Assembly: GCF_006345805.1 (NCBI RefSeq)
Contig: NW_021835954.1
Coordinates: 62,001-126,000 of the forward strand
Direction of reading: 5' to 3'
Length of the DNA: 64,000 nt
Source of the DNA: Octopus sinensis
Lineage: Eukaryota
Shown here: in pieces, positions 3,540 to 48,989 of the stretch
Numbering within the stretch: the first letter of the stretch is position 1
Layout of the letters: every line of letters begins with the position of its first letter
The notes under the pieces: model-generated
Seen by the model: only the letters and a program-made list of their open reading frames with translations
What the model was told of the DNA's origin: nothing
The model's database searches: none
Translations under genes and position numbers: made by a program

Positions 3540-3931
3540 TCTCTCTCTATATAAAGCTGAAGTTGTCTGTGTATGGCAGGTTTGGTAGCCTTCAACTAAC
3601 ACTATCTCCTCCGAGACCCTGTGGCACAAGTTGACTAAAATTGGTAGTATGATAGAAGAAGGCTTGCTCTTCCTTCCGTAGAAGAAACATTTCAAATCGG
3701 ACCATGTTAACACCAAAAATTATTTACATCAAAAAGTGGTTTTTTTTCTATGAAAATTCCCATTTTTTACGATTTTTTTACTGCTATGTTGCCATTTTTC
3801 AGTGTATTTCAACCAGAAAAATGTTCACTTAAAGAGAATAACAAGCTACATAATGCAAAAGTTTTACTTTTCAAAAATTCCAATTCTAAGAGGTCGAAAC
3901 AAACCCGAGCAACGCTGGGCGATACTGCTAG
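3540..3931 (+). mobile_element. Non-autonomous Helitron
   Basis: Starts A|TC (TCTCTCTCTATATAAAG), ends with hairpin CCCGAGCAACGCTGGG then CTAG|T; canonical Helitron termini and A/T target. Confidence 0.7.
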
Positions 3932-4029
3932 TATTAAATATTCATATCTTTTATCTTTTTCAACCTCATTCCTTTCAATTAACAGTGTATGATCCACTGA
4001 CTTGATGGTCACAGCTTGCTCAATATATA

Positions 4030-4177
4030 TACGATGGGCTTCTTTCAGTTTCTATCAACCAGATCCACTCACAAGGCTTTGGTTGTCTTAAGGATATGGT
4101 AGACGACACTTGCCCAGTGGGATTGAACCTAAAACCTTGTAGCTACAAAGCAAGCTTCTTACCACACAGTCATACTT
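4030..4177 (-). mobile_element. tRNA-derived SINE family B, 5' fragment
   Basis: Reverse complement of the family-B head (TGTGTGGTAAGAAGCTTGCT ... CCTTGTGAGTGGA). Confidence 0.75.
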
Positions 4178-4687
4178 CAGAATCTTTTAAACATAGTATT
4201 TTACCACCGACATACAGACCCAGTAGTTTCCAGTTCAAACAACAATATGGTCAGATATCAATACCAACCCATTATAAGTTTAGAACATTGATAAAACCAG
4301 AATTAAGCAAGGGTGCTGTAGATTATCAAGACACTTCATTTATATTGGTCTAGTCCATTCAGATGAAATGGGTACCACTCAACAAAAGCTGGAGGTTAAC
4401 CTTGCAACACACTGGTGTCCTATCCAGATAAGATGTCTTGAACTGTCAGTCACTAAAACACCTCCGAAAATGAAATAAATCCAGACTAATTAGTTTCTGG
4501 GCTCAAGACAGTTTTTAAGTTTCACTAATTATCAGGGTATTAATCAATAAAATAAAATCAACAGAACATTGTTTTAAAGCAATATCAGAAAAATGTATAT
4601 TTTAATTACTTTGTTGCTGTTTAGCCCCAGATGAATCAAACCTACGCTAATAGGTATTTCAGATGTAATTATATCATCTTTTTAAGT

Positions 4688-4885
4688 GCTGGCATAGCTG
4701 TATGGTAAAAAGCTTGCTTCTCAATCACGATGTGGCACCTTGGGCAAGTGTCTTCTATATAGACCTGGGCTGACCAAAGCCAACACCAGCTGTCAACACA
4801 AGTACAAAGACACACACATAGATATACACTTATATATTTGGTGGGTTTCTTTCAGTTTCCATCTACCAAATCCACTCACAAGGCT
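4688..4885. mobile_element. Rearranged SINE family B fragments (plus-strand head joined to minus-strand body)
   Basis: 4688-4780 matches the head in plus orientation; 4790-4885 matches the body in minus orientation. Confidence 0.6.
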
Positions 4886-4886
4886 C

Positions 4887-5009
4887 TGCCAGATCAAGAT
4901 TGGAGCCTGGTGCAGCCATCTGGTTTGCCAGCCCTCAGTCAAAATCGTCCAACCCATGCTAGCATGGAAAGCGGACATTAAACAATGATGATGATGATGA
5001 TGATGATGA
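4887..5009 (+). mobile_element. RTE LINE 3' terminal fragment (GAT tail)
   Basis: GCCAGATCAAGATTGGAGCC...CCATGCTAGCATGGAAAGCGGACATTAAAC(AATG/GAT)n. Confidence 0.85.
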
Positions 5010-5153
5010 CAACATCATCCAACATTTCTTTCTCCTTTTAAGATGACAGGGTGTGATTTGATGAGGGAAATTTGGCTGCAATTCCTAACAGGATGGGTAA
5101 CCACACACACACACATATATATAGACACACACATGCACACGTGCACGCACGCA

Positions 5154-5340
5154 TACGAGAGGGTATTAAAAAGTTCCTTGCTTTGGATAAAAGAAAATAC
5201 TAGAAGCTCAGTTAATTATGATTTTATTCAACATATTCCCCTCACAGATTCACACACTTCTTGCAGTGGTCCTTCAGTTTTTCTAAGCCCTGTAAAAGAA
5301 CTTGGAAGGTTGGGCCTTCAACCAGGCTTATCATGATACC
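5154..5340 (+). mobile_element. Mariner-type terminal fragment / MITE remnant
   Basis: Begins TACGAGAGGGTATTAAAAAGTTCC, a mariner-like TIR resembling those at 40285 and 42892. Confidence 0.45.
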
Positions 5341-5924
5341 CTTAAAGCCAGGAACTTTGCAGCAACTCCTCGAATATATATATATCGTTGCTGTTATGTT
5401 AAACAGTCATATGTCCAAATTTGGCCAAATGGATCTTTATCAATATTCAATTCTGCTTGCAATAGCCAGTTCTTTTCATGAAACTATCGTATTTGCAACT
5501 GCTTCAGATGAAAACTGTCAAAGTGTAGTACAATGGTTTAGCATTTTTCAAAAGTGTAGTAAGCCCCACATACAACAGTTTAGCTAAAATATTTCTGACT
5601 GACAATATCATACATGCATGGAGTTATGATTTTATGCACCCAACAAAGTATTATTGTTAAGCTGAAACTGTTGCTAATGTAAAAAGAAAATTTTAATATC
5701 TGGATGTTCATTCACATATACAACAACCCCTGTTGCTAACTGTGAACTATAAAATTAACTTTTTTCAGCTTATCGTACTTCGATATGGGAAAAATTCACA
5801 ACCTTCTGTGTCAATAAACCACTATTGTCTCTGAAAGTTGTTTTTTATACATTCTACAGATTGCTTGAATCTCACTAACTTCCTACACCTTGATCCTTGG
5901 ATCTTACCGTTATATATATATAAC

Positions 5925-6235
5925 ATTCAAGCGAAGTCGTTGCTAGTGCCACTGGACTGGATCCTGTGCAGGTGGCACGTAAAAAACACCATTTGAGCAT
6001 GGCTATTGCCAGTGCCATCTTACTGGCCCTCATATCGGTGGCACGTAAAAACACCCACTACACTCTCGAAGTGGTTGGCGTTAGGAAGGGCATCCAACTG
6101 TAGAAACACTGCCAGATCAAGATTGGAGCCTGGTGCAGCCATCTGGTTTGCCAGCCCTCAGTCAAATAATCCAACCCATGCTAGCATGGGAAGCAGACGT
6201 TAAACGATGATGATGATGATGATGATAATGATGAT
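5925..6235 (+). mobile_element. 5'-truncated RTE LINE 3' UTR copy
   Basis: Two tandem units, conserved core and (GAT)n tail. Confidence 0.85.
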
Positions 6236-6283
6236 ATACATACATACATATGAATATGTATATATATATGTATATATATATAA

Positions 6284-6541
6284 ATCATCATCATCATCAT
6301 CATCATTTAGCATCCGCTTTCCATGCTAGCATGGGTTGGACGGTTCAACTGGGGACTGTGAAGCTGGAAGACTGCATCAGGCCCAGTCTGATCTGGCAGT
6401 GTTTCTACGGCTGGATGCCCTTCCTAACGCCAACCACTCCGTGAGTGTAGTGGGTGCTTTTTACGTGCCACCTGCACAGGTGCCAGACGGAGCTGGCAAA
6501 CGACCACGAACGGATGGTGCTTTTACGTGCCACCGGCACAG
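6284..6541 (-). mobile_element. 5'-truncated RTE LINE 3' UTR copy
   Basis: (CAT)n tail at left, conserved core, flanked on both sides by (TA)n. Confidence 0.85.
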
Positions 6542-6544
6542 GTA

Positions 6545-6586
<42 letters not shown>

Positions 6587-6587
<1 letters not shown>

Positions 6588-6785
6588 TTTATTTAAAGCA
6601 GCAGAAAATTCAACAAAACCTGTTACTCTGAGTTTCACGTTGCCGTTCATCGGACAGTTTTTGCTAGCAACGTGAACGGCAACGTGAAAATCAGAGTAAC
6701 AGGTTTTGTTGAATTTTCTGCTGCTTTAAATAAAGCATATTACTCTACCACTGGTATTTGAGTACTCTTTTTTCCACCTTGTTTC
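6587..6785. mobile_element. Fold-back (palindromic) Penelope-type non-autonomous repeat
   Basis: Arms about 6587-6646 and 6676-6735 are near-perfect reverse complements; flanked by (TA)n; contains a hammerhead core. Confidence 0.6.
6620..6657 (-). ncRNA. Minimal type-I hammerhead ribozyme (U4C core variant)
   Basis: Minus strand CUGU-CCGAUGA-ACG(GCAA)CGU-GAA-ACU(CAG)AGU-A-ACAG; helices I, II and III all pair; GUA cleavage triplet. Confidence 0.6.
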
Positions 6786-7048
6786 ACATTTATGTGTTTA
6801 CTCCGATATATATATATATATATTTTGATGTAAAAAGGTTGAATGTAGATTCGTCCTTTAATTCGGAGGTTTCCAAAAAAGATTTCTAATATTGATTCTT
6901 TATATTTTGCTGGTAGTTTACAGGCGTAAATTTGTGAATATGAAAATAATAATTGTGTATGATGTGTGGTGAATTTATGGAAAGAAATTCCATAAAACTC
7001 AGCAATTTAGTTACAATTGGAGAAGACAAGGTGTTAAAATATATAAGA

Positions 7049-7494
7049 GAATTTTAATTGAGGCAGACGATCGTTTTGTACAGAGATATAAAAATAATGG
7101 AAATTCATGACTGAACTGAATTAAATTAAATTAATTAATTATATATCAATGTACTCTGCAGTGTAGGAAGTATAAACAAAGTTTTTACAATGAACAAGAG
7201 AAAGGAAATAGCAGGAGAATAGAATCTAGAAGATTCATATTTATCTTTATGAGAAAGAGATGTGAGTCCAGTTAGGTATTAACTATAAATTATGAATTTA
7301 CGAGATACTATTCTCCTGCTATTTCCTTTCTCTTGTTCATTGTAAAAATTTTGTTTATACTTTCTGCACTGAAGATTACATTGATATATAATTAATTAGT
7401 TTATTTAATTAATTTAATTTAATTCAATTCAATCATGAATATCCATTATTTTTATATCTCTGTACAAAATTATCGTCTGCATGAATTAAAATTC
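7049..7494. repeat. Large AT-rich fold-back element; part repeated directly at 7620-7770
   Basis: Arms about 7049-7225 and 7300-7494 are reverse complements; 6960-7110 recurs at 7620-7770. Confidence 0.65.
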
Positions 7495-7543
7495 ACCACG
7501 CATTATACACACACACACACAACACACACACACACACACACAC

Positions 7544-7588
<45 letters not shown>

Positions 7589-7769
7589 TATATATAATAT
7601 ATATATATATACACATATAATGTGTGGTGAATTTATGGAAAGAAACCCCATAAAACTCAACAATTTTGTTAAAAATGGAGAAGAAAAGATGTTAAAATAT
7701 ATAAGAGAATTTTAATTCATGGAGATGATCATTTTGTACAAAGATATAAAAATAATGCAAATTCACCAT

Positions 7770-8055
7770 GATAGATTGCTAGCCACTAAACCTTTTTTTA
7801 TTCTCTCCCTGTTTTTTTCTGTGTTCCTTTCTGTCCAAGAGCATAGGCTCGAAATGTAAAAGACTTTCTCACTTCCCAAGTTCTCCAGCTCATAGATCAC
7901 CGCCTACCACATTGTTATAAAAGGTAAGGCCAGTCATGAAAAATTAATTGTGGCACCTCAAAATGAATTAACCCTTACATGAATAAGTTTACTAATGCAT
8001 CTGTTTGTTGTTTACACACCCATCTTCGTCTTTTGTTTTTTTGTAAATTCTCATT
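7770..8055 (+). mobile_element. Degenerate hammerhead-type repeat (related to 34400-34600) interrupted by a 105-bp insert
   Basis: GAGC-ATAG-GCTC-GAAA helix II retained, but the core is decayed (CTGTCCAA); pyrimidine-rich flanks resemble the 34.5 kb copy. Confidence 0.45.
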
Positions 8056-8063
8056 ATATATAC

Positions 8064-8374
8064 AAGTAACAAGGATGTCCAGGTATTAATATATTACGGA
8101 CGTTTTGAGAAGCTCCATTTAATTGATCAATGATAATATTACATCAATTTGAAAGAAACCAGTCTCCTCAGACGTAGACGATGATATAGATTTCCAACAT
8201 AAAGGATAAACCATTGTTATGAATGGTCTATCCTTAATGTTGGAAATCTATGTGGTCGTCTACGTCTGAGGAGAGTGGTTTCTTTCAAATTGATGTAATG
8301 TTTTCATTGATTGATTAAATGGAGCTACTTGCAATGGCTGTAATGTATAGGTATCTGGACATCCTTGTTACTTA
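8064..8374. mobile_element. Fold-back Penelope-type repeat with a decayed hammerhead in each arm
   Basis: About 150-bp arms are reverse complements; both carry CTGAGGA-GAG/GAC...(G)AAACGGCCGTA-like remnants; tail GGACATCCTTGTTACTT resembles the 24.3/51 kb family. Confidence 0.6.
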
Positions 8375-8536
8375 TTTACAATTTGTTCACCTAAATTAGA
8401 GCTGTGTGGACTATACCGAACTGGTTTGGTGTCTCAGTTCAAGTATCTAATTCAACTGAATCTTATTTTATATATATGAGTGTGTGTATGTGTGTGTGTG
8501 TATGTATATATGTGTGTGTGTGTATATATGTATATG

Positions 8537-8984
8537 TAGTCTGATCAATAAGTATCCAAACTGTTGCCATAGTAACGAAGCTAAAGCACATGTATATATT
8601 TCCCCTCACAGTTCTGCTGATTGAGGGTCTCCCAGAATGTTCATCAATATCAACATTTTTCAACCATCTTGGAAACATCTGAACCACTCGTACACTTGTG
8701 TGCGACTCATACACTCCTCTCCATACACTTTCTGTAACTTAGTGTAGGCCTCTGAACAGGTATCACCACGACAACTTACTCTGTCATGGTCAATGCAACA
8801 ATCACACACTACACACCTTCCTTCCAAGCACTGCTGTAAACGGTGGAAGTGAGCTACAATGTTAAAACCCAGTGCACATGCACAGCAAAGCTGAAGGTCA
8901 AGCTGTGCCAAGCAGCTTTACTCTGCATGTTTTAGCTTCGTTACTATGGCAACAATCCAGACACTTATTGATCAGACCTTCGGA
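8537..8984 (-). mobile_element. Internally deleted mariner (MITE-like)
   Basis: About 45-bp TIRs (GTCTGATCAATAAGT...GTTGCCATAGTAACGAAGCTAAA) at both ends; internal CSEAYTKLQKVYGEECMSRTQVYEWFRCFQDG...DEHSGRPS is a mariner HTH N-terminus. Confidence 0.85.
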
Positions 8985-8994
8985 TGTATGTGTG

Positions 8995-9027
<33 letters not shown>

Positions 9028-9042
9028 ACACACGCACACACA

Positions 9043-9830
9043 CAGAGTGTGGTGAACAAATTGTCATCTAAATTATGCAAAAATGAAAATAACACTGATA
9101 CCTCATTTTAACAGATATGTTTATCAAAATTACATAAAAATATGGAATACTAAAAAGTAAATTCATTCAATAAAACCGCCATTGGATTCAACCACGAGCC
9201 TCCAGATGACCATAATCATTGCCTTCAGTTCATCTTTGGTGTTACAAGGAGTTTTGTTGGTCTCTTGCTTAACTGCACCCCACACATAATAATGAAGGGG
9301 GTTGTAGTCTGAGGAGTTAGGTGACCAGCTGCTAGGGGTGATGTGGTTGTTGAAATTGTCTGAGAGCCATGACTGGGTCCTCCTGCTTGTGTGGCATGGT
9401 GAAGAGTCCTGTTGTCAGACATAGCATCTTCCTGCAGTCACCCTCTTGACCCAGGTCAGCACTTGATGTAGACCTCTGTGTTGAGTCTGAGGCCATAGGG
9501 GAAGATGAATGGAAATATAACGTTGCCATGATGTTGACTGGATGTTTGATTTTTATCATTCTCAGTACATGACCTCACATTGCACAATCCTCAGATTGAC
9601 ACCCAAACACTCTGAAATGTTCGTATTAGAGCTTCTGGCATGAATGCCAAGCAGTACAGCATGTTGTTTCCAAATTTCTGGCAGAGTGAATTGTGTCATG
9701 GTGTTGTTTTTCTCACAGACGGTGCCCAACTGACCCTACTATGCTTAGTAGTCAACAAAATCAAAAACAAACAATGTGCATGTGTGAAATTAAAAATATA
9801 AAATGGCAACAATTTACCCATCGCACCCAG
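9043..9830 (-). mobile_element. Internally deleted Tc1/mariner (DD37D/maT-like) transposon
   Basis: Degenerate TIRs at both ends; minus-strand frames give HAVLLGIHARSSNTNISECLGVNLR and QDSSPCHTSRRTQSWLSDNFNNHITPSSWSPNSSDYNPLHYYVWG. Confidence 0.75.
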
Positions 9831-9867
9831 TATGTGTGTGTGTGTATATACACATACATATATACAC

Positions 9868-9910
<43 letters not shown>

Positions 9911-9913
<3 letters not shown>

Positions 9914-10388
9914 TCATCATCATCATCATCATTTAGCGTCCGCTTTCCATGCTAGCATGGGTTGGACGGGTCAACTGGGGTCTGTGAAGCTGGAAGGCTT
10001 CGTCAGGCCCAGTCAGATCTGGCAGTGTTTCTACGGCTGGATGCCCTTCCTAACGCCAACCACTCCGCGAGTGTAGTGGGTGTTTTTTACGTGCCACCTG
10101 CACAGGTGCCACACAGAGCTGGCGAACGGCCATGAATGGATGGTGCTTTTACGTGTTACCGGCACGGGACCAGGCGATGCTGGCAACGGACACGAACGGA
10201 TGGTGCTTTTACGTGCCACCGACACGGGGCCAGACAGAGCTGGCAAACGGCCACGAACGGACGGTGCTTTTACGTGTCACCGGCACGGGGGCCAGGCAGA
10301 GCTGGCAAACGGCCACGAGCGAATTGTACTTTTACGTATCACTGGCACGGGTGCCAGACGAGGCTGACAGCGGACACGAACGGATGGG
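9911..10388 (-). mobile_element. 5'-truncated RTE LINE 3' UTR copy with about 5-6 tandem units
   Basis: (CAT)n tail, conserved core, repeated GGTGCTTTTACGTG units. Confidence 0.85.
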
Positions 10389-10465
10389 TCACTTAACCCC
10401 TGCTTTTTGATATATGATTTGATTTTGATTTTGATATATATATATATATATGTATGTTTATATGT

Positions 10466-10510
<45 letters not shown>

Positions 10511-11029
10511 TACATATATATATATATACATATGTATATACATTCATACATACATACATATGTGTGTGTGTATGCAGTTTTTCATAAAAACATATACATG
10601 CATACACATAACCAATGATCTTTTGAACTTTCTTGATGATAGCAAATTATTATATTTTTGTGTGTATGTCGTGTGAGAAAGAGTATAAAGGAGATATCCA
10701 CAGTTACTCTTGCTGAGAGACAGAAAACTTTACAAATAATGGCAGCCATATGAGTTTTACAAGCTGTTATTCTGATATCTCCATTGTCTAGAAAGTCTCT
10801 TGTACGTATTTATTAACTAAATAAAGGAGATACAGTACATAAAAAATACAGATATGGTCAAGTGAAATCTACTTTACTAGGTGCTAAATTATCAATAAGT
10901 AATTTGAGTGAAAAAGAAATAAAACATTTCTAGTGTGGTGTTAGTGTTGTTAAATAATTATTGAAGAAAGATAATGTCTGATAGGTTGTCTGTTATGTTC
11001 TTAATGGCCTCATAATGGTTTAGAATTTT

Positions 11030-11228
11030 GGTACAAGGCTAGAATTTCATGGGAGGGGGTACTATGTCAATTACTTCGACCCCCAGTACTCAACTCAACT
11101 TATTTTATCAACCCTGAAAGAATAGTATTCAAAGTCAGCCTCAGTAGAATTTGAACTCAGAACATAAAGTTGGATGAAATGTTTCTAAGCATCTTGCCAA
11201 GAAGCTCATGATTCTGCCAGCTCACCTC
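11030..11228 (-). mobile_element. tRNA-derived SINE family D, diverged copy
   Basis: Reverse complement of GAGCTGGCAGAA...TTCTGAGTTCAAATTC...GGTTGATAAAAT...; matches the 57828 copy. Confidence 0.65.
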
Positions 11229-11261
11229 TTTCTTGGCCACACTAATATTGGTATTAGTTCT

Positions 11262-11492
11262 TACTTCTCTATTGCCCACAAGAGGCTAAACATAGAGGGG
11301 ACAAACAAGGACAGACAGATGGATTAAGTTGATTATATCGACCCCCGGTGTGTAACTGGTACTTATTTAATCGACCCCGAAAGGATGAAAGGCAAAGTCG
11401 AACTTGGCGGAATCTGAACTCAGAATGAAGCAGCAGACGAAATACTGCCAAGCATTTCGCCCAGTGTGCTCACGTTTCTGCCAGCTCGCCAC
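11262..11492 (-). mobile_element. tRNA-derived SINE family D, near full length
   Basis: Reverse complement closely matches 57828-58060, including TTTGCCTTTCATCCTTTCGGGGTCGATTAAATAAGTACCAG. Confidence 0.8.
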
Positions 11493-12426
11493 CAAGTGAG
11501 CTTTTATTATCAAACTTTTATTATAAGCTTTTTTTATCAAGTAACATTTGCATTTACATACATAGAACAGTTGAATAAATAGAACAACATCCAAGCGATA
11601 TCAAATGGAATAAGTTCAAGTTTCACTGCAGAATATACTAATTAGTAATATAATAATTAGCTCATAATTGAGAATGAATTAAGTTGAAAGAAAGAGAACA
11701 CCTTATCCCAAAACTGACTTTGAAAAACTCCTCAAGTCATTCTGTCTGGGAATTCAAAATCCCAACTTCTTATAATACTCAGTGGAATTCCTAGAATGCT
11801 CAACCAGGCTATTTGATCAGAAGACTCCAGTTTATTTGGTCATAAGTCATGTTCATGTAAGAGTTAATTCATTTTGTGGTGCCACAATTAATTTTTCATG
11901 ACTGGCCTTACCTTTTATAACAATGTGGTAGGCGGTGATGTATGAGCTGGAGAGCTTGAGCATCATGGTTCAAAATGCAGAAGGAGCTTTACTATACATT
12001 TAAGAAAGAAAATGTAATTTCAGAATGGCAGCAGAAAACATAAGCACCTAAGCATGTTAACAGTAGTTTTTTTGGGTTTTTTTTTTGACTGGATAATAAT
12101 TTTCAAAAATGCATTTAGCTTGGCTTTCTCGATGCCATTATTTTGGAAGTTTACTGCATATATTAACAAGTTGAAGAAGATTCTATATTTCACTGCTTAA
12201 GAATTGTGGAATTAAAATGCTCTCTAAATTAGACATGAAAGTTATAGGAAGGGAGAATGCAAAGTTGGGGCATTTTGCTTCTCTTCTTGACAGTACTTAG
12301 GCAGATATTTGCAGTTCATAAGAGAGGAAAGACTGACTAAAATTCAAAGAGAAATGCTAAGTTCTTCACTCTTCACTGAGTTTCATTTCATTCCTAAGAT
12401 AATGATCAGATTAACAACATCACTTG

Positions 12427-12537
<111 letters not shown>

Positions 12538-13257
12538 TCTTTATTGATCTATGGCATTCAGTCTGGATTATTTCTTTAAATTTAGGATAAATTTCAGAAT
12601 CTGAGGAAACTAGTGATGGTCTGTGTTAGTAATAAATAGAATTAGTTCATTGAAGTTCTTCAATGAGTGGAATTCTGTGAGAAGTGGAGAAATTGATATT
12701 TCAAGTTGTTTGTATTAGTCTGAAAGTGAAGAGAGAGAGGGGGGGAGGGGGAGAGAAAGTGATGTTGTTAACCTCATCAGTTATCTCTTTCCATTCACTT
12801 ACATTACTAAAGCAGTGCTCTGGCACTCACTCCCCTGACTCAGTGTCCACAACTGAGTCTGACATTCCTGTGGCTCACTGTGGGGGATAAAGTTCATCTC
12901 ACTCTGATATATATATTGTGTTTTTAGCACTACACATCTATCATCTCAGATAAAAACCACAGCATCATCCTTACAAAGCTACATGTGATTGATTTTGAGT
13001 TTTTACATGACCCCCTCTACCTGCTATAAATAACAGCCAAATCTCCTCAAATCTCACTCTACTGTCTTCAATAATGGGAGGACACATTGAAGAACATAAA
13101 CCAAGACATTCTCCTAGAAAGATGGTGTGGTCACTTCTGGAAAGTCTTTGAGTATAGATCTGCTCTCAGTCAGAGCAGACACGAGGTGGTGGAGGCGGCG
13201 GTGGCGGCAGCGGTGGTGGTCTATAGGTAAAAAAATGATTGAGCAATACCGATTTAG

Positions 13258-13435
13258 AATATTGGCAAGCTCATTAGAACCTCAGAAAAAATGCTTGTTG
13301 TGTTGGTTCCAGGTCTTTACATTCTGAGTTCAAATTACATGGAGGTCATCTTTACCTTTTGGCTCTGCAGGGATCTATAATGTAAAGTACAGGGGTTGAT
13401 GTGATCAACTAACTGCACCACCACCCCCTGTAAAT
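13258..13435 (+). mobile_element. SINE family D, diverged fragment
   Basis: AAAATGCTT...TTCTGAGTTCAAATT...GGGGTTGATGTGATCAAC similarity to other family-D copies. Confidence 0.5.
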
Positions 13436-13560
13436 TGTGCCTAAATGAGAAGCAATACAAGTTGGCCATTTTATGTGCCTAAAGCAAAAGATTCCCAATA
13501 TTTGATATAAACACAAAATTACAATGACTCCCAGATTCAATATTAGAAAATAATTTGATA

Positions 13561-13898
13561 ATTCTGTTGTGTCTGGGGAGAGTCATTTTCTTTTTGTGCT
13601 TTATAATATAACACACTCACCATTAAAATTTCCACTTTTTTCTTATTTTTATTTTCCTAAAATTTTCGTTGCGTCTTGCAACCTTTTCAATAGTTTTGAC
13701 TCTCAAGACTATTGAAAAGGTTGCAAGATGCAACGAAAATTTTAGAAAGATAAAAAGAAATGAGTAAAAATTTTACCGGTGAGTGTATTACATTATAAGG
13801 CACAAAAAGAAAATGACTCTCTCCAGACACAACAGAATATGCTTCAACATGCAAACTCATATAAAGAATCTTGCAAACCAAATCCAAAAACGAAATTT
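13561..13898. mobile_element. Asymmetric fold-back element (same family as 45782-46081)
   Basis: About 140-bp arms are reverse complements centred near 13703, with a 60-bp unpaired extension; a second copy lies at 45782. Confidence 0.75.
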
Positions 13899-13911
13899 AA
13901 AAATTCCATAC

Positions 13912-14287
13912 CATCAATGATGTAATATCCACGAATAGCTTCACGAGGTGATGACTTCCAGTGAATATTCTTTTGTTTCTTTGAGGTCATATACTGGTAT
14001 AAACGGATCATATAATCTGGTGCTGAAGTGTGGTTACTCCAAGTCGGACTTACTTCAGAATCGAGATTGGACAGCAAATAATATTCTACCATTTGATGAA
14101 ACATTCGCAGGTCAGCATGACTTTTGGGCTTTGAAGTAGTTGGCTCAGTTATGGTTGTCCCACAGTTGGTGCAGCTTGCCGTTGTAGTTGAGCTTCTTGC
14201 TCTAGAACTGTAAAATCTTTGGGTGTTTCCATTTTGCTCACTTGAAACAAAGGCACAGAGAAGTATTATCGGAAGCCTAATAAGCAT
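13912..14287 (-). CDS. First coding exon of a putative TGF-beta superfamily ligand (signal peptide plus N-terminal prodomain); rest of gene not found in window
   Basis: ATG at 14287 opens MLIRLPIILLCAFVSS (hydrophobic signal peptide), then SCTNC (CxxC as in activin/myostatin prodomains), LRMFHQMVEYYLLSNL, SAPDYMIRLYQ (cf. BMP/GDF P-x-YMLxLY) and EAIRGYYIID (cf. NTVRSF). Ends after 125 codons + 1 nt at a G|GTATGG donor, the phase-1 intron position known for BMP2/4 and myostatin genes. Confidence 0.7.
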
Positions 14288-14750
14288 AATATATTCAGAG
14301 GTATTTTGCTGCACTAACTTATCTTTTTCAATTTGATAATAAAATATATAATTATTGTAGAGTATCCCCTTGCATATAAATATCAGAAATATTTAAGAAT
14401 ATAAGAAATTGACTGTAATATTGACTTGCATTCAACAAACACTTCAAACCCTTACTCTATATCATCACAGTAAAATGTTTTTTGTATGAAAGCATATCAT
14501 TGTGTTTTATGTTGTAAGTGATGGTAGTAACCAGTCAAATATTGTATGGTCTTGAAATAATGTCTGCTGGTTATTATAAATGCATACACAGATACAAACA
14601 TATATGTGCATGTATGTGTGTGTATATATATATATGTATATATATATATATACACACATGTCAAAGGACCTGCATACTGTACTTGAAATTCTAATGAGCG
14701 GAAAAATAGAACTGCCGACTAAACAAACGTCAACTTGTTGACAAGTCAAT
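14288..14750 (-). promoter_or_regulatory. Putative 5' UTR / proximal promoter region of the TGF-beta-like gene
   Basis: Non-repetitive sequence directly upstream of the ATG (apart from a short TA/TG tract). No in-frame upstream ATG. No TSS can be fixed from sequence alone. Confidence 0.3.
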
Positions 14751-14779
14751 GTCATGTAAAACAGAAATTGTATATATTA

Positions 14780-14827
<48 letters not shown>

Positions 14828-15060
14828 TGTGTGCATGTGTGTGTATGTGTGTGTGTATGTGCGTGTGTATAATTATGCATATGTGTACATATATATGCAT
14901 GAGTGTGTATATATACATATATATATATATCTCTATATATAAAGAAATATATGTATGTATATATGTATGTGTGTATATATTTGATTTTTGATTTTGATTT
15001 TCCAGTTTCAGCTAATGAGCTGTGGCCATGCTGGGGCACCGCCATTTATATATATATATA

Positions 15061-15379
15061 TCATCATCATCATCATCATCATTTAGCGTCCGTTTTCCAT
15101 GCTAGCATGGGTTGGACAGTTTAACTGGGGTCTGTGAAGCCGGAAGGCTTCATCAGGCCCAGTCAGATTTGGCAGTGTTTCTACGGCTGGATGCCCTTCC
15201 TAACGCCAACCACTCCGTGAGTGTAGTGAGTGCTTTTTACGTGCCACCTGCACAGGTGCCAGACAGAGCTGGCACACGGCCATGAACGGATGGTGTTTTT
15301 TCGTGCCACCGGCACGGGGGCCAGGCGAGGCTGGCAACGGACACGAACGGATGGTGCTTTTACGTGCTACCGGCACGGG
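15061..15379 (-). mobile_element. 5'-truncated RTE LINE 3' UTR copy
   Basis: (CAT)n tail, core and three units; abuts a SINE B head. Confidence 0.85.
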
Positions 15380-15790
15380 GGCGCAGGAGTTGCTGTGTGG
15401 TAAGTAGCTTGCTTACTAACCATATGGTTCCGGGTTCAGTCCCACTGTGTGGCACCTTGGGCAAGTGTCTTCTGCTATAGCCTCGGGCTGACCAATGCCT
15501 TGTGAGTGGATTTGGAAGATGGAAACTGAAAGAAGCCTGTCGTATATATGTATATATATATATATGTGTCTGTGTATATGTTTGTGTGTCTGTGTTTGTC
15601 CCCCTAGCATTGCTTGACAACCGATGCTGGTGTGTTTACGTTCACGTCACTTAGCGGTTCGGCAAAATAGACCGATAGAATAAGTACTGGGCTTACACAG
15701 AATAAGTCCTGGGGTCGATTTGCTCGACTAAAGGCAGTGCTCCAGCATGGCCACAGTCAAATGACTGAAACAAGTAAAAGAGTAAAAGAG
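15380..15790 (+). mobile_element. tRNA-derived SINE family B, full length
   Basis: GGCGCAGGAG..GCTGTGTGGTAAG (A box) ... GGTTCAGTCCC (B-box-like), central TA/TG microsatellite, tail GACTGAAACAAGTAAAAGAGTAAAAGAG. Confidence 0.9.
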
Positions 15791-15798
15791 TATATATA

Positions 15799-15864
<66 letters not shown>

Positions 15865-15869
15865 ATATA

Positions 15870-15941
<72 letters not shown>

Positions 15942-16534
15942 TATACATACACATGTATGCATTTATATATATGGAGGGTGTATGTGTGTGTATATATATA
16001 TATATGTGTCTTTGTTTTATTAGAAACAGAAAAAATTCACAAATTATTACCATACACAAATACCTGACACACACACACATAACCACCTATAAGCACACAC
16101 ATGCTGAAATAAAAGTTTCATATGCCAATAGCCAACACTAGACTGTGTGATATTGAGTTATTATTTCGTCAATAACACTGTCTGATATTAAATTTATTGA
16201 GCCAATCGATACAATATTGAATTGAAGTTATTGAATCAAAAATACTTTTTGAAATTTAATCTATTAAGTGAATAAATAGTGTGTGAAATTAAATTTGCTG
16301 AGTCTGTAATTGAAGCCAGAATAATGTTGCCAATTCACCTCGCTTTTGTCTTCTGTAGCCTTCTGTAGGCGTCAGAGAGTTTGCATCTCCTTCCTTTGTT
16401 AAGAACTAAAAGACAGCACGTTGCTTTTGCTGGAAACCTATTATTATTTTCCAGCAATGAAGAAACGGTTGAGAATTTACTCCATATCATGTGCAATTTG
16501 GACAACCTATATCAGTTAATAAAACAATTATACT

Positions 16535-16926
16535 GGTAGCTTTGTGTTAAGAAGCTTGCTTCCCTACCACATGGTTCCGGGTTCAGTTCCACTGCATGTC
16601 ACCTTGGCCAAGTGTCTTCTACTTTAGCCTTCGGCTGAACAAAGCCTTGTGAATGGACTTGGTAGATGGAAACTGAAAGAAGCCCATCTTATATGTGCAT
16701 GTATGTGTGTGTGTGTGTGTGTGTCCATGTTTGTCCTCCCTACCACCACCACTGCTTGACAACCAGTGCTGGTATATTTACATCCTTGTGACTTAGCGGT
16801 TCGGCAAACAGACCAATAGAATAAATACCAGGATTTAAAAACATGAATACTTGAGTCAGTAGATTTCATTAAAAATTCTTCAAGGCATTGTCCCAGCATG
16901 GCCACAGTCTAATGTCTGAATCAAGT
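16535..16926 (+). mobile_element. SINE family B, diverged near-full copy
   Basis: Colinear with 15380-15790. Confidence 0.8.
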
Positions 16927-16952
16927 TGTGTGTGTGTGTGAGTGTGTTTTAC

Positions 16953-17362
16953 TTACTCTTTTACTCTTTTATTTGTTTCAGTCATTTGACTGCAGCCATG
17001 CTGGAGAACCGCCTTTAGTCGAGCAAATCGACCCCGGGACTTATTCTTTTTAAGCCCAGTACTTATTCTATCGGTCTGTTTTGCCGAACCGCTAAGTGAC
17101 GGGGACGTAAACACACTAGCATCGGTTGTCAAGCAATGCTAGGGGGACAAACACAGACACACAAACACACACACGCACATATATATGTATACATATATAC
17201 GACAGGCTTCTTTCAGTTTCCGTCTACCAAATCCACTCACAAGGCATTGGTCAGCCCGGGGCTATAGTAGAAGACACTTGCCCAAGATGCCATGCAGTTG
17301 AACTGAACCCAGAACTATGTGATTCGTAAGCAAGCTACTTACCACACAGCCACTCCTACACC
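16953..17362 (-). mobile_element. SINE family B, full length
   Basis: Reverse complement of 15380-15790. Confidence 0.9.
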
Positions 17363-17424
17363 TATATATATATATATATTTCATTACTAAACAAATAGAA
17401 CAGAAAAAGCAATGAACTGGGAGA

Positions 17425-17630
17425 ACCTTTGGTGTGTCAGACAAAATGCTTAGCAGAATTTCTTTTGACTCTTTACGTTCTGAGTTCCAATCTTGCTAAG
17501 GTCAAATTTGATTAAAACTTTTTGGGGATCGATAAAATAAAGTAGGGGCCAGAAACAAGAGTTGATATAATCTATTTGCTGCCCTTGCCTAAACCGAAAT
17601 TTGCTGACCTTGTGCTAAAATTAGAGAAAA
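17425..17630 (+). mobile_element. SINE family D, diverged copy
   Basis: AAAATGCTTAGC...TTACGTTCTGAGTT...GGGGATCGATAAAATAAAGTA...TTGCTGACCTTGTGC. Confidence 0.6.
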
Positions 17631-17836
17631 ATTAGAAAATAATTTGTATTTCATTTTGGAAATCTTACTTAGCAAGTTTATAAAAGCATTTGAATGTTTG
17701 CAGACAAGTGTGTGTATGCTTGTATATGTTTGAATTTATAAGAGTGTTTTTATGTATGGGTGTGCTTATAACAAAGGAATATATATGCATGAGTATATAT
17801 ATGTAAGTGAAAGAGTGAAAGAAAAGACGTTGTATA

Positions 17837-17878
<42 letters not shown>

Positions 17879-18189
17879 GATAGACAGAGGCAAAAAGAGA
17901 GCAACAGGGAGACAGAGAGACAAAGAGAGACAGAGAGGCAAAGAGTGACAGAGAAGCAAAGAGAGACAGAGAGAGATAGCGATAGATAAAGAGAGACAGA
18001 GAAAGTGACAGTGTTTTGAATTTGATTGTATGATGAATACTTTTTAAATATGTAAGATAAAAAAAAAATATTTATAATTTTGATTGTGTTTGCATTTGTG
18101 CAAACGAGAATAAGAAATCAGTGGAGCTTTTATACGTTTTGTTTTTGTACATGTTTGAAATAGGATACGGATGGGGTTTATGGGTGTGT

Positions 18190-18266
18190 GTATGTATGTA
18201 TGAGTGTATACATATATATATGCATGCAACGAGAGTGGTTTGCATATGTTTGTGTCTGCATGTATG

Positions 18267-18298
<32 letters not shown>

Positions 18299-19100
18299 TG
18301 GTTGTTTGTATGTATGTATGCATGTATGTATGTATGTATGTATGCATGCCTGTATGTATGTATGTATGTATGTATGTATGTATGTATGCCTGTATGTATG
18401 TATGTATGTATGTATGTATGTATGTATGTATGGTTGTTTGTATGTATGTACGTATGTATGTATGTATGCATGTATGCATGTATGCATGTAGTATGTATGT
18501 ATGTATGTATGTATGTATGTATGTATGCATGTATATATGTATGTATGTATGTATGTATGTACGTATGTATGTATGTATGCATGTATGCATGTATGCATGT
18601 ATGTATGTATGTATGTATGTATGTATTTATGTATGTATGTATTTATGTATGTATGTATGTATGCATGTATATATGTATGTATGTACGTATGTATGTATGT
18701 AGTATGTATGTATGTATGTATGTATGTATGTATGTACGTATGTATGTATGTATTATGTATGTATGTATGAATGCATGCATGTATGTATGTATATGCATGT
18801 ATATATGTATGTATGTATGTATGTATGTACGTATGTATGTATGTATGCATGTATGCATGTATGCATGTATGTATGTATGTATGTATGTATGTATTTATGT
18901 ATGTATGTATTTATGTATGTATGTATGTATGCATGTATATATGTATGTATGTACGTATGTATGTATGTATGTATGTATGTATGTATGTATGTATGTACGT
19001 ATGTATGTATGTATGTATGCATGCATGCATGTATGTATGTATGTATGTATGTATGTATGTATGTATGCATGTATATATGTATGTATATATATATATGTAT
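18190..19100. repeat. About 900-bp (TATG)n tetranucleotide array
   Basis: Direct reading; source of several spurious MYVC/HTYI ORFs. Confidence 0.95.
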
Positions 19101-19196
19101 GTAAAATATTATTAGAGACAAAACCACTATTTTGCAAAACAAACAAGGAAAGACTTAATCAATACATAAAATTTTAATAAATAGTCAAAAAAACCG

Positions 19197-19239
19197 CCAC
19201 TACAATCGTTTCTTGTCTTGATCGACAATCTTCAGGTGG
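19197..19239 (-). ncRNA. Minimal type-I hammerhead ribozyme, intact core
   Basis: Minus strand CCAC-CUGAAGA-UUGUC(GAUCAA)GACAA-GAA-AC(GAUU)GU-A-GUGG. Confidence 0.75.
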
Positions 19240-19271
19240 ACTTCCAATAAGTCAGTTTCAAATTATGTATA

Positions 19272-19307
<36 letters not shown>

Positions 19308-19664
19308 TGTATGTATTATGTATGTATGTTTGCATGCATATACTTTTGTCAATACGAAGGTACGCTCATGTCTGTTTTAACAGGGAATGCAGATGTGTTG
19401 GTGACGGGAGGGCAGATTTAACAGCCGACTAGTTTCAGAGGTCAAAGGTAATTTTAGGGGTTATTCTATCAATTTTAAAAAAAATTCAAATGTGTCCAAT
19501 GTTGACATTTTCCTATGAGAAACTTTTTGAAGCAAGGTAAACATTCTGGTTGGCTGTTGGGTAGATTGAACCCTTGTAGCAACATCTCTCACATACACTC
19601 ACTCTATACCTCCCATCTTCCCTCTTCTCAGTTACTCTGTCCATGCACTCCCAATAATGGTAAC

Positions 19665-20155
19665 ATCTTCATCGTCCTCCTCCTCCTCATCATCATCATC
19701 ATCAGCATCATTACCATCATTGACGTCATCATCGTCATCATTATTGTCATCATCATGATCATTGTCATCATCATCATTGTCATAGTCGTCGTCATCATCA
19801 TCATCATCTTTATCATCAGCATCGTCATTATTATCATCATCATTGCCATTGTCGTCATCATCATTATTATCAACATCGTCATCGTCACCATTATCATCAT
19901 ATCATTGTTATTATCATCACCATCATTGTCAGCATCATCATTATCATCATCATAATCGTCGTCATCATCGTCACCATCATCCTCATCCTCATCATTGTTA
20001 TTGTCATCATCATCATCATCATCATCATCGCCATCATTATCATCATATCATTGTTATTATCATCACCATCATTGTTATCATCATCATCCTCATTGTTATT
20101 ATCATCATCATCATCATTATCATCGTTATCGTCATCGTCATCATCATCATCATCA
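19665..20155. repeat. About 490-bp degenerate (ATC)n array continuous with an RTE-type tail
   Basis: Direct reading; joins CATCATTTAACATCCACGTTCC at 20156. Confidence 0.9.
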
Positions 20156-20310
20156 TTTAACATCCACGTTCCATACTGACATGAGATGCACAGTTCAAGG
20201 GGATCGAGCAAACCAAAGGACTGTGTTGAGCTCCAATGTCTTACTTTGGCAGAGTTCCTAAGGCTGGATGCCATTTCTAATGCCAACCACTCTACATTGT
20301 GTACTGATAG
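20139..20310 (-). mobile_element. Old diverged RTE 3' UTR copy
   Basis: TTAACATCC...GGCTGGATGCCATTTCTAATGCCAACCACTC similarity to the younger copies. Confidence 0.6.
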
Positions 20311-20830
20311 CTATCCTCAAGGTAATGGCACTAGTGAAATGGCCTAAAAACTTGCAAGACAAAGAAAGTCTCTTGACTAAACGAGGCCATAATAGAGAGA
20401 GGCGTTAACTTTATACTAGGTATTGAATGGCTAAAATATTATTGAGGGTCAGGCATGGATATCCTGGTACAGAGGAAAGACATCAAAAGGCAGTTGTAAA
20501 TGAGCACCACTGGCATCATGCAGTTTCGTGTGTTTCCAATCTTCTGAGAAACATTTTCGGCTTCAAGCAAATATTTTGCTTGCAAACTGGTTGGTCAGTG
20601 ACAGCATTTCAATTTTACCAGAAATGGAAGAGGTGCATGCACTGAGAGAATGAGTAAAAGCCTCACCCTCGTTGTTTCTAGCAGAGGCAAAAGCTCGGAA
20701 ATTTGTGGTGATTCTATTGACCAAGTGTTTATCTAGTATATATTTTATTGACTCTGAAGAAATAAAAGGCAAAGTTGACCTAGATGGAATTTGTCAGTGC
20801 TTCTATTTATTTTGGCACTAAATCCACTAT

Positions 20831-21323
20831 CATCGAAATCAAATTCAATGACTGGCATCCGTGCTAGTGGAGCGCTAAGGGAACCATATGAGTGAGATCA
20901 GGGCCAGAGCAACAAGCTGGCCTCTGAGCCAATGGCACGTTAAAAACACCATTTGAGCGTGATTGTTACCTGTGTCGCCTTACTAGCACTTGTGCTGGTG
21001 GCACGTGAAAGAATGTTTGAGCAAGGTCGTTGCCAGTGCTGCTGGACTGGCTCCTGTGCAGGTGGCACATAAAAAGCACCATTTGAGCGTGGCCGTTGCC
21101 AGTACTGCCTGACTGGCTCTCGTGCCAGTGGCATGTAAAAGCACCCACTACACTCTCTGAGTGGTTGGCATTAGGAAGGGCATCCAGCTGTAGAAACTAT
21201 GCCAGATCAGACTGGAGCCTGGTGCAGCCATCTGGTTCGCCAGACCTCAGTCAAATCGTCCAACCCATGCTAGCATGGAAAGCAGATGTTAAACGACGCC
21301 GATGATGATGATGATGATGATGA
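20831..21323 (+). mobile_element. 5'-truncated RTE LINE 3' UTR copy (subfamily 2)
   Basis: Colinear with the reverse complement of 183-606; (GAT)n tail. Confidence 0.85.
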
Positions 21324-21349
21324 CTTCTTTTTTATTAAAATCAGTGAGT

Positions 21350-21830
21350 TTTGTGTTAGAATCTACAAAACCAAGAGAACTAATGTAACCCATAATTTCT
21401 TTATAGATGATATAAAGATCTATACCAGAAATATTTATAATGTTGAGAAACAACTGGGTTTGCTAAGATTTTCTGCTGATATAGAATTAGAATTCAGCAA
21501 AAAGAAATGTTTTTTTTTAACAAAACTGATTCCCCAAACTAAAATCTTTACATAAATTGTTTCACTTTCTTTCCTCTTCCACATTATGAGTGCAACAAAT
21601 TTCTAGTATTTGATGAAAATTAAGATAGATTAATCAAAGAATATTATCATACACTTTAAAAAGTATTGTAGTCAGAACTTTCTTCTTATGAGACAAAATT
21701 CACAGTGCATTTACAGTACCAATGTTGACACCAACATTGGGGATACTGTGATGTCCTGTAGAGGAAATCTACTCAATAGATACTAAAATCTATAAGCTAG
21801 TGATAGATTCTGTTACAGAAGAAAAGATTG
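21350..21830 (+). pseudogene. Degenerate non-LTR RT fragment, R4/Dong-like by motif recall
   Basis: THNFFIDDIKIY...LRFSADIELEFSKKKC (RT catalytic region) and, downstream, AFTVPMLTPTLGIL*CPVEEIYSIDTKIYKL. Confidence 0.55.
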
Positions 21831-22314
21831 GGAAAGATCAGTAATGTGTCTTAGAGTACAACATATTATCACTCTGATATTTTCTAATCAGTAGCAGCTA
21901 AAATAAATACATCAGCCAAGTGCACCCAAGCGAAAAGAACAACATTTTATGGGTCAGGAGTTAACTCTTCAAGAAGTGTTCACTTCCTAAGGACCTCCCA
22001 TTTAATTCCAGAATTTCTGGACTAGTATACTTCAACTAAGATCTGGAAGAGAAACAATCTGCACACCACAGAAGAGGTTATGCATGAGTATATGCATGAG
22101 TATAAACTCGAGCTTTGACATAAAATGTTGCCTCACCTGGACTCATAACTGTTAAATCATATCACATTGCAAAGGTTTTGCTTTTGCAATCCAAGAGCTG
22201 GAGATATCTATGAAATACCTAAGGAATAAAAGAGATAGAAATGCCCTTAAATAGCCAAGATGCAGCCAAATGTTGACTATGTCACATTTCTGTGAATGAT
22301 TCATGGTACTGGGG

Positions 22315-23172
22315 GATGATTCATCCCCCCAGTTGTAATTGTAGGATTAGATCGAAATGTCCAATATCTGGCCACTGTTTGGTCCAAAATGTAATTTATG
22401 AATGTACAATAGTGACTTCAAATAATAACTATCTTTATTTTGGTTGTTCAGTGGATTTAAAAAAAACGTTTAAACAATCATTTTTCCTCCTTTAGGCTTA
22501 AATACAAGGCATGTTGCACAACATTGTCTAGTAAAATTTGGGAACTGAAAAGGAATAATATAGAATTCAACCTGAAATGGGATATAGTAAGGAAAGCACG
22601 GCCTTATAAAAATAGTAGGGATGGTTGTGAACTTTGTTCTTTGGAAACATATGAAATTTTAAAACATAGGCGCAGGAGTGGCTGTGTGGTAAGTAGCTTG
22701 CTAACCAACCACATGGTTCCGGGTTCAGTCCCACAGCGTGGCATCTTGGGCAAGTGTCTTCTGCTATAGCCCCGGGATGACCAATGCTTTGTGAGTGGAT
22801 TTGGTAGACGGAAACTGAAAGAAGCCTGTCGTATATATGTATATATATATAAGTGTGTGTGTATATGTTTGTGTGTCTGTGTTTCTCCCCCTAGCATTGC
22901 TTGACAACCGATGCTGGTGTGTTTATGTCCCCGTCACTTAGCGGTTCGACAAAAGAGACTGATAGAATAAGTACTGGGCTTACAAAGAATAAGTCCCGGG
23001 GTCGAGTTGCTCGACTAAAGGCGGTGCTCCAGCATGGCCGCAGTCAAATGACTGAAACAAGTAAAAGAGTAAAGAGAGAGTATAGGAATAATACAAATCT
23101 ATTAAATAACCGTTCTGAACTAGGAGCATCTTGCATACATCGCACAACCCGTACGTTTAAATATTTTAAATA
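22315..23172 (+). pseudogene. Penelope-like (Neptune-type) GIY-YIG endonuclease C-terminus, split by a SINE
   Basis: CNCRIRSKCPISGHCLVQNVIYECT...YLYFG; LSSKIWELK...LKWDIVRKARPY...CELCSLE; after the SINE the frame resumes RNNTNLLNNRSELGASCIHR. Confidence 0.85.
22669..23080 (+). mobile_element. SINE family B, full length, nested in the Penelope ORF
   Basis: Full consensus match; ATAGG on both sides. Confidence 0.9.
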
Positions 23173-24189
23173 ATAATATTTTGACCATTCCTAAATTTTT
23201 CAAATTTTAATTCTTTATAACTAAATCATCATCATCATCAGGAATGAATATACCATACTAGCTTTTAATTCAACATGCATAGATTACTAAAAAACTTCAT
23301 TGCATACTTAGAATTAAATTCTCTTTTTTTATTTTTTTTTAATAATCTCCTATATTAAATAGTATAAATTCTATGTCCCTAAGGAAACTACTCGGTTCAT
23401 CTTGATTACCTCACTTCCATTTCTTGATATATCATTAACCCAGGATATCTTTACCTAACTAATTAGCTTCTCTCCACGAGTAATAAATATTATGTCAAAC
23501 AGATTCATTAATTTAATTCATTAATAACAATTCACTATCTACTAAATCTGAGTAATTTACTCTTCTTAATTACTTCTCTTCATAAAAATTAATCACCTTC
23601 TACTAAACCTAAGAAAAGTACTCATCTTGATTACTCCTCTTCCAGTTTTTCTAATATATATATTTGACCCCTAATATATTCACTTTATTAATAAGACTTT
23701 TGTCCTCAGTTATTGAGTATTATACCTACTCATAATAAATTATAGATTATTCTCCAAAATTAATAAATATTAGATTTATAATTTCTCCTTTAATCCAACA
23801 TATCAAAATAATCAACTCCTACTAGCTAAGTATAAAGCCGATCTATATAAGTATAAAGGAATCTCTGTATTCTCTATAAGTTTTTGGTATATAGGTGGTC
23901 ATTGTGACCATCTAGCATTGACCTAGTTTTCTCCATACAAAATCTGTTTGCCAAATTGTAGTAAACAACTTCTAGGGCATTATAATCCCCTCTCTACTTT
24001 AATTTCTTTAGGAATAACTTCTAACATTTATTTCACCCCTATTTCTATAAATAGAAAACCTCTTTTGTCTCCATTCAACTGAATATCCTTCCCCACTTTC
24101 TAGCAGTTCAAAATAACTTAAAGAATATTCTTCAGTCAGAAGATAAACTCTAATACCTTAATGTTCTTAAAATTCAAATCAAAATCTCT

Positions 24190-24480
24190 GTCTATATATC
24201 TACCCTCTCTATAATGTTATCAATTAATATGAAAATAGGTATTAATGGAAAACCTCTATAAATGGCTGATGATTGCTCAACATTTTAAAACTGTTGTAAT
24301 ACTTACAATGTTTAATAAAATGATGTAGCGTGAAACAATCGTACCAAATTACCGAAGATATTCTTGTTGCTTATTTTGATTATAATCACCCCACGGATTT
24401 ATATGGATAACACCATACAAAATTCTGGTGCAACTAACTTAAGTACCATATTCATTTGAATCTAAATTTTGCTGAACTTA
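24190..24480 (+). mobile_element. Hammerhead-bearing Penelope-type repeat (same family as the 51 kb fold-back)
   Basis: Colinear with 51300-51535 and with the reverse complement of 50994-51210; ends ...TCTAAATTTTGCTGAACTT followed by (TA)n. Confidence 0.7.
24263..24346 (+). ncRNA. Type-I hammerhead ribozyme with extended helix II
   Basis: UGG-CUGAUGA-U-UGCU...AGCG-U-GAA-AC(AAUC)GU-A-CCA; U-U at the first helix II position. Confidence 0.55.
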
Positions 24481-25807: not shown

Positions 25808-25973
25808 ACATACATACATACATACATGCATGCATGCATACATACATACATACATACATACATACATACATGCAAGCATGCATGCATACATACATGCATA
25901 CATTCATACATACATACATGCATGCATGCGTGCATACATACATGCATACTTACATACATACATACATACATAC

Positions 25974-26004
<31 letters not shown>

Positions 26005-26265
26005 CATGCAGGCATGCATGCATACATACATACATACATACATACTTACATACATACATACATACATACACACATACATACATACATACATACATACATA
26101 CATACATGCATGCATGCATGCATGCATACATACATACATACATACATACATACTTACATACATACATACATACATACATACACACATACATACATACATA
26201 CATACTTACATACATACATACATACATACATACATGCATGCATGCATGCATACATACATACATAC

Positions 26266-26296
<31 letters not shown>

Positions 26297-38287: not shown

Positions 38288-38320
<33 letters not shown>

Positions 38321-48953: not shown

Positions 48954-48989
<36 letters not shown>

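Follow-up and report, generated by a model that had tools for sequence, protein, structure and literature searches.

Within the TGF-beta superfamily, the ligands GDF3, GDF9, BMP15 and Lefty are without the interchain cysteine and form non-covalent dimers or heterodimers; the residue that they carry at the interchain position is Ser, not Phe. Myostatin has a first coding exon of 373 coding nt that ends in phase 1. In the prodomain, the motif PxYMxxLY is shared generally across the BMP subfamily (PMC7017013), and cysteine pairs upstream of the alpha1 helix are conserved in activins, inhibin-betas, Dawdle and myostatin/GDF11 and not in BMP members (PMC7017013). The locus compared here with these systems lies in a 64,000-nt stretch of Octopus sinensis DNA (contig NW_021835954.1, positions 62,001 to 126,000; hereafter the window), where an original prediction, made from the letters alone, had placed an isolated first exon of a divergent TGF-beta-superfamily ligand. 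The minus-strand stretch 14287..13912 is almost certainly the first coding exon of a three-exon O. sinensis gene encoding a pre-pro-protein, predicted to be secreted, that belongs to the BMP clade of the TGF-beta superfamily. The predicted family assignment is borne out by PF00019 in the full protein, by an RKKRR site and by a match to the BMP9 prodomain, and the mollusc host that had been expected is O. sinensis. Annotations of the gene already exist in RefSeq (O. sinensis, O. bimaculoides) and in GenBank (Argonauta hians); being in RefSeq, the gene is not a discovery. No paper on it turned up in a literature search.

An exhaustive phmmer search of 1.84 billion proteins with the exon-1 peptide returned a single match, P0001 (XP_036355991.1, 349 aa, "bone morphogenetic protein 4-like isoform X2", Octopus sinensis), with 100% identity over residues 1-125 and E=8e-78. 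Isoform X1 (P0002, 417 aa) has the same first 125 residues as P0001. Full-length and profile protein searches yielded four octopod proteins only, and the orthologues come from O. bimaculoides (XP_014781594.1), O. vulgaris and Argonauta hians (GAB1603580.1). The 125-aa exon found no match in a word-indexed homologue search; that index evidently does not reach ordinary BMPs, so neither this null result nor the octopod-only matches are informative on taxonomic restriction.

The gene encoding P0002 lies on contig VCDQ01001801.1 of assembly GCA_006345805.1, with which window positions 1..24287 are 100% identical. Concatenated genomic exons 1, 2 and 3 reproduce P0002 (417 aa) exactly, and exons 1 and 3 reproduce P0001 (349 aa) exactly. 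In window coordinates on the minus strand, exon 1 occupies 14287..13912, exon 2 occupies 138..-65, and exon 3 occupies -4304..-4977. The 125-codon minus-strand frame of exon 1 starts from the ATG at 14287, is part of a 156-aa ORF at 13844..14314, and ends in ...ATT GAT G directly before GTATGG, with the GT donor at 13911-13910. The predicted limits of 13912-14287 are therefore exact, with the ATG, the donor at 13911 and the spliced proteins all reproduced, and the predicted phase-1 end is confirmed by the split codon, G/AA (Glu) or G/GC (Gly). The features of the gene within the window are as follows.

1..138, minus strand: first 138 of the 204 nt of coding exon 2, (E)KSTLQNLVFNVSCQPLNETITHVELVLSRCSSTLEPFDPTGSSQL..., prodomain-arm beta2 and beta3
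139..13911, minus strand: intron 1, GTATGG to CCCCCAACAG, 13,773 nt, phase 1, filled with repeats
13912..14287, minus strand: coding exon 1, 376 nt, 125 codons plus 1 base, phase 1, with exact genomic splicing
14240..14287, minus strand: codons 1-16, MLIRLPIILLCAFVSS, predicted signal peptide, read from the sequence
14162..14173, minus strand: codons 39-42, C-T-N-C, two cysteines in the spacer ahead of the alpha1 helix
14063..14113, minus strand: codons 59-75, DLRMFHQMVEYYLLSNL, prodomain alpha1 helix (straitjacket), amphipathic
13997..14020, minus strand: codons 90-97, PDYMIRLY, the BMP-subfamily PxYMxxLY (alpha2) motif
13913..13939, minus strand: codons 117-125, AIRGYYIID, first beta strand of the prodomain arm and final codons of exon 1

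Exon 2 is preceded by the acceptor ttttttttatcccccaacag and crosses the left edge of the window. It was missed by the original prediction, which had called exon 1 isolated and the only host coding exon; exon 2 begins at 138, within the window. Because it starts there, intron 1 measures 13,773 nt, and the first intron of more than 13.9 kb that had been proposed is not found. Intron 2 (4,238 nt, GTAAGT...TATTTTCAG) is also in phase 1, and both introns are GT..AG. The mature-domain exon, exon 3, lies ~4.3 kb outside the window and contains the remaining prodomain, the RKKRR site and a 140-aa mature region ending in a six-Cys cystine-knot domain. The expectation of a downstream minus-strand exon with a TGF-beta domain was right as to its existence and its place to the left of the window; the domain has six cysteines, not seven or nine. 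As had also been stated, 1..13911 holds no cystine-knot exon: tblastn with P0001 and with provisional vertebrate mature-domain sequences found none in the window, and the sole match of regex screens for knot patterns across the window was a mariner HTH fragment.

Skipping of the symmetric 204-nt exon 2 gives isoform X2, whose product, as read from the sequence, would lack part of the prodomain arm. Exact-product look-ups with isoform X2 and with the exon-1 ORF read through to its stop returned none; the form on record is the longest isoform only.

Gene models and conservation are the basis on which the ATG at 14287 and the donor at 13911 are taken to be used. The O. vulgaris gene model P0005 (MGGID-EQNGN...) begins at a different exon, which the window also contains.

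19603..19616, minus strand: mini-exon ATGGGAGGTATAGA, followed by the strong donor GTGAGT, used by the O. vulgaris gene model P0005

In P0005 this mini-exon joins an internal exon-1 acceptor (AG at 14242-14241), so that the product is without the predicted signal peptide; this 5' exon may be a genuine alternative or an artefact of annotation. The O. bimaculoides UniRef model A0A0L8GF51 (P0007, 464 aa) has 48 extra residues upstream of the ATG. Since the same frame in O. sinensis (window 14288..14431, minus strand; L001 9857..10000) has a stop, this upstream extension is probably an artefact. The leader MLIRLPIILLCAFVSS itself has Arg4, a hydrophobic core, V at -3 and S at -1, followed by Glu17. 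In Argonauta, a different in-frame Met lies upstream of the annotated Met and is followed by a hydrophobic stretch.

Comparison among octopods locates the constrained part of the exon. Of the 21 nucleotide differences in exon 1 between O. sinensis and O. bimaculoides, 14 are synonymous and 7 are non-synonymous; all six amino-acid changes (6/6) fall within residues 1-49. Residues 50-125 show five synonymous changes and no replacements between these two species, and the alpha1 helix is unchanged. Argonauta retains MVEHYLLSNLDSEV...SAPDYMLRIY...REAIRGYY with scattered substitutions only; there PDYMIRLY is invariant except for I/L changes, REAIRGYY is invariant, and the phase-1 donor falls one codon later than in O. 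sinensis. The spacer with C39-x-x-C42 is Ser/Thr-rich. Its CxxC pair is found in O. sinensis, O. vulgaris and O. bimaculoides; Argonauta has C-x23-C instead.

Intron 1 is ~2.6 kb long in Argonauta, ~8 kb in O. bimaculoides and 13.8 kb in O. sinensis, where its large size is repeat expansion. The window as a whole is AT-rich (GC ~0.37), and its other inspected ORFs of at least 110 aa are microsatellite read-through, repeat-derived or unassigned, with two of them reverse-transcriptase fragments. Within intron 1, a Mos1/mariner transposase HTH_48 fragment lies at 8663..8917 on the minus strand (E=1e-8). Just past the exon-1 donor, overlapping ORFs at 13569..13715 (plus strand) and 13687..13887 (minus strand) encode near-identical peptides (SGESHFLFV.YN..HSP.KF...); together (13569..13887) they look like two inverted copies of a short intron-1 repeat element, and a related copy lies 32 kb away at 45937..46085. 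A SINE-like element with internal ~62-nt tandem units (GTGCTTTTACGTGCCACCGGCACGGGG...) is present in many copies (10085..10387, 15230..15387, 33091..33225 and 50018..50237), and a repeat of ~410-430 bp recurs with 84-93% identity at 15380..15796, 16954..17365, 22666..23084, 38128..38543 and 48759..49198. These two elements are the source of most non-microsatellite ORFs. The long microsatellites, (ATGT)n with ~213 copies at 18260..19103, (CAT)n with ~165 at 19664..20156 and (TACA)n with ~134 at 25807..26344, yield spurious ORFs, the longest of 337 aa, on both strands. The RVT_1 ORF fragments, at 28817..29389 (plus strand, E=2.5e-27) and 63107..63694 (plus strand, E=1.5e-11), are decayed LINE-type retroelements; a Pfam search with the ORFs 54687..55160 and 59425..59853, near RVT_1 fragments, gave no match. 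Outside the window, ~1 kb left of its edge, intron 2 contains a partial exon-2 duplicate, NVSCQPLNETITHMELALSRCSSTLE (L001 25327..25413, 92% protein identity), which is probably a pseudo-exon.

The Pfam check proposed for the exon gave a weak TGFb_propeptide (PF00688) match, E=0.075 over residues 65-106 (a span that takes in PDYMIRLY), which falls below the gathering cut-off of 25.8 bits; CBM_20 and PHD20L1 were equally weak. Against the PDB, the exon-1 peptide alone met only spurious S27e zinc-ribbon matches to its CxxC region. TGFb_propeptide scored E=0.016 for P0002 and 2.9e-4 for the Argonauta protein, both likewise below the gathering cut-off; though weak, these sub-threshold matches are specific.

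A profile of three octopod prodomains, compared with 177,635 PDB sequences, had two matches only, the BMP9 prodomains of human and mouse, with E=0.0015 and 0.0048. The alignment extends over alpha1, PxYMxxLY and beta1-beta3, crossing the exon 1/exon 2 junction in the correct order. In it, DLRMFHQMVEYYLLSNL is aligned to the BMP9 stretch NLKMFLENVKVDFLRSLNL, PDYMIRLY to PPQYMIDLY, and AIRGYYIID falls directly after NIVRSFS of BMP9, opposite ...EDAISITATED; the exon-2 segment is also aligned to the BMP9 prodomain by the octopod profile. On the basis of this alignment, exon 1 comprises the straitjacket (alpha1, loop and alpha2) together with beta1, and exon 2 comprises beta2-beta3 of the arm. The octopus prodomain resembles that of BMP9 (GDF2; PDB 4YCG and 6SF2) in its alpha1, loop, PxYM(I)xLY, beta1 and beta2-beta3 (LFNxS...ITRxEL). 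The similarity is nonetheless weak, at 21 bits, and in the mature domain BMP9 is a poorer match than BMP2, BMP6 and BMP7 (7e-10 versus 1e-20). Taken at the level of sequence, these comparisons support, though weakly, a prodomain homologous to the TGFb_propeptide type, with straitjacket and arm.

The C-terminal 104 residues of the full protein match TGF_beta (PF00019; E=2e-23) with 83.8 bits for P0001, 83.3 for P0002 and 87.5 for P0004, relative to a cut-off of 27 bits. P0002 has one R-x-[KR]-R site only, RKKRR at 273-277, which in Argonauta reads RWKRR. The best PDB matches to the mature domain are BMP6 (1.6e-20, 76.8 bits), BMP2 (2.8e-20, 76.0 bits) and BMP7 (4.7e-19, 72.0 bits), followed by GDF5 (6.5e-15), BMP3 (2qcq; 2.4e-14, 56.5 bits) and activin A (1.9e-12), and at lower scores by BMP10, TGF-beta2, BMP9 (7e-10), GDF15, GDF11 (1e-6) and GDF8 (6.6e-6). 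By blastp, the mature domain is 32-38% identical to all human BMP-clade ligands compared, a provisional set of sequences that provides a lead and not a test; in that set GDF3 (90 bits), BMP2 and BMP7 rank highest at ~37% identity each, with human Nodal below them. The AlphaFold2 model built from a four-sequence alignment has a mean pLDDT of 28, too low for use.

The mature region has six cysteines as compared to the usual seven-Cys pattern. Phe381 (PAPFCVP) is aligned to the first Cys of the BMP6 CC pair, which is the interchain-disulfide Cys. The motif PAPFCVP / PEPFCVP is invariant, with Phe kept in 4/4 octopod sequences, including those of O. bimaculoides and Argonauta hians. The protein is in this respect like GDF3, GDF9, BMP15 and Lefty, in which the fourth (interchain) Cys is absent; because these are known members, the missing cysteine is no bar to membership of the superfamily. 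The octopod loss is most likely independent of theirs. As compared to BMP2/4 and BMP5-8 (BMP6, BMP7), the octopus protein has in common the single Cys before CxGxC, NSTNHA, PxYMxxLY and an RxKR-type cleavage site. It differs from them in its ~37% identity (provisional human sequences), in the Phe that replaces the interchain Cys, in its ...CACL end and in the Cys pair upstream of alpha1.

The gene may be a cephalopod- or octopod-restricted BMP-clade paralogue in which the interchain disulfide was lost and an activin-like Cys pair was acquired before the straitjacket. It may, with similar reserve, be a fast-evolving orthologue of another ancestral molluscan BMP-clade family (Nodal, ADMP or Vg1/GDF1-like) rather than a paralogue specific to octopods. 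The ...CACL end of the protein and its IIYAP are reminiscent of vertebrate Nodal, and its three coding exons also favor such an origin, as does its identity of 32-38% to every human ligand compared; with identities to all of these provisional sequences similarly low, every ligand class stays in play. Human Nodal, in contrast, scores under BMP2, BMP7 and GDF3 in the same set. Nodal-like and ADMP-like genes are present in scallops (PMC10763453), which again fits an ancestral class, and on cephalopod Nodal there is nothing in PMC5104510.

By the RefSeq names "BMP4-like" and "BMP2-A-like", the gene would simply be an octopus BMP2/4 (dpp) orthologue, and the PDB search does place BMP2 near the top (E=3e-20). 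We consider this orthology improbable. Mature identity to human BMP2 is ~37%, no more than to BMP7 or GDF3 (provisional sequences, a lead only), the PDB search leaves BMP6, BMP2 and BMP7 indistinguishable, with no clearly closer match to BMP2/4, and the interchain Cys is gone. Molluscan BMP2/4 orthologues are normally far closer to vertebrate BMP2/4 and keep seven cysteines. Since identity to the provisional set of BMP-clade ligands is evenly low, the RefSeq names are best taken as names of similarity, not of orthology.

Placement in the activin/myostatin or BMP3/GDF10 branch, which CxxC and YMIRLY...IRGY had brought to mind, is very unlikely. For BMP3, the mature domain has CSGxC and CAC, both of which are also in BMP3; for activin/myostatin, three Octopus species have CxxC upstream of alpha1, the kind of pair described for the prodomains of that branch (PMC7017013), but the pair is absent as such in Argonauta. 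PDB scores for activin, myostatin and BMP3 are far weaker than those for BMP2, BMP6 and BMP7. The octopus mature domain, unlike those of activin and myostatin, is without the nine-Cys pattern, with one Cys before CxGxC and no extra N-terminal Cys pair, and, with pro-activin, pro-myostatin and pro-TGF-beta all available in the PDB, the prodomain profile matches BMP9 instead. The mixed motifs that the original prediction had pointed out, CxxC, the helix and YMIRLY...IRGY, are all present; as a subfamily signal they are unreliable, because CxxC is not kept in Argonauta and because mature domain and prodomain alike point to the BMP clade. As a candidate, an activin/myostatin-like or BMP3-like exon was rejected on the PDB score ranking and the non-conservation of CxxC.

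It is scarcely credible that exon 1 is a chance or pseudogenic ORF stitched by annotation pipelines to a real TGF-beta exon: the exon alone is without a significant Pfam or PDB match and the O. vulgaris annotation has another 5' end, but between two Octopus species residues 50-125 show zero amino-acid versus five synonymous changes, the alpha1-to-beta1 block and the phase-1 donor are kept in Argonauta, and the BMP9-prodomain profile match spans the exon 1/exon 2 junction in the right order.

Family knowledge suggests how the product of this BMP-clade gene would work. The leader would target the pro-protein to the ER and the secretory pathway, where the straitjacket encoded by exon 1 (alpha1, loop and alpha2) would clasp the growth-factor fingers during folding and also after cleavage. 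A furin-type convertase would cut after RKKRR, and the mature dimer would signal via type I and type II Ser/Thr-kinase receptors. With Phe in place of the interchain Cys, this dimer, whether homo- or hetero-, is expected to be non-covalent, as in GDF3, GDF9, BMP15 and Lefty.

The locus is a case in which a TGF-beta prodomain exon was recognisable from raw sequence, with exact boundaries and intron phase. The result holds little surprise and is of modest interest to evo-devo specialists; what interest is left concerns the ancestral class of a fast-evolving, six-Cys gene and the effect of the lost covalent link on octopod signalling. If the gene is indeed a cephalopod- or octopod-restricted paralogue, then its product might pair non-covalently with canonical BMPs in heterodimers, or modulate them, instead of forming a classical covalent homodimer, and the exon-2-skipping isoform X2 would provide a form with a truncated prodomain arm.
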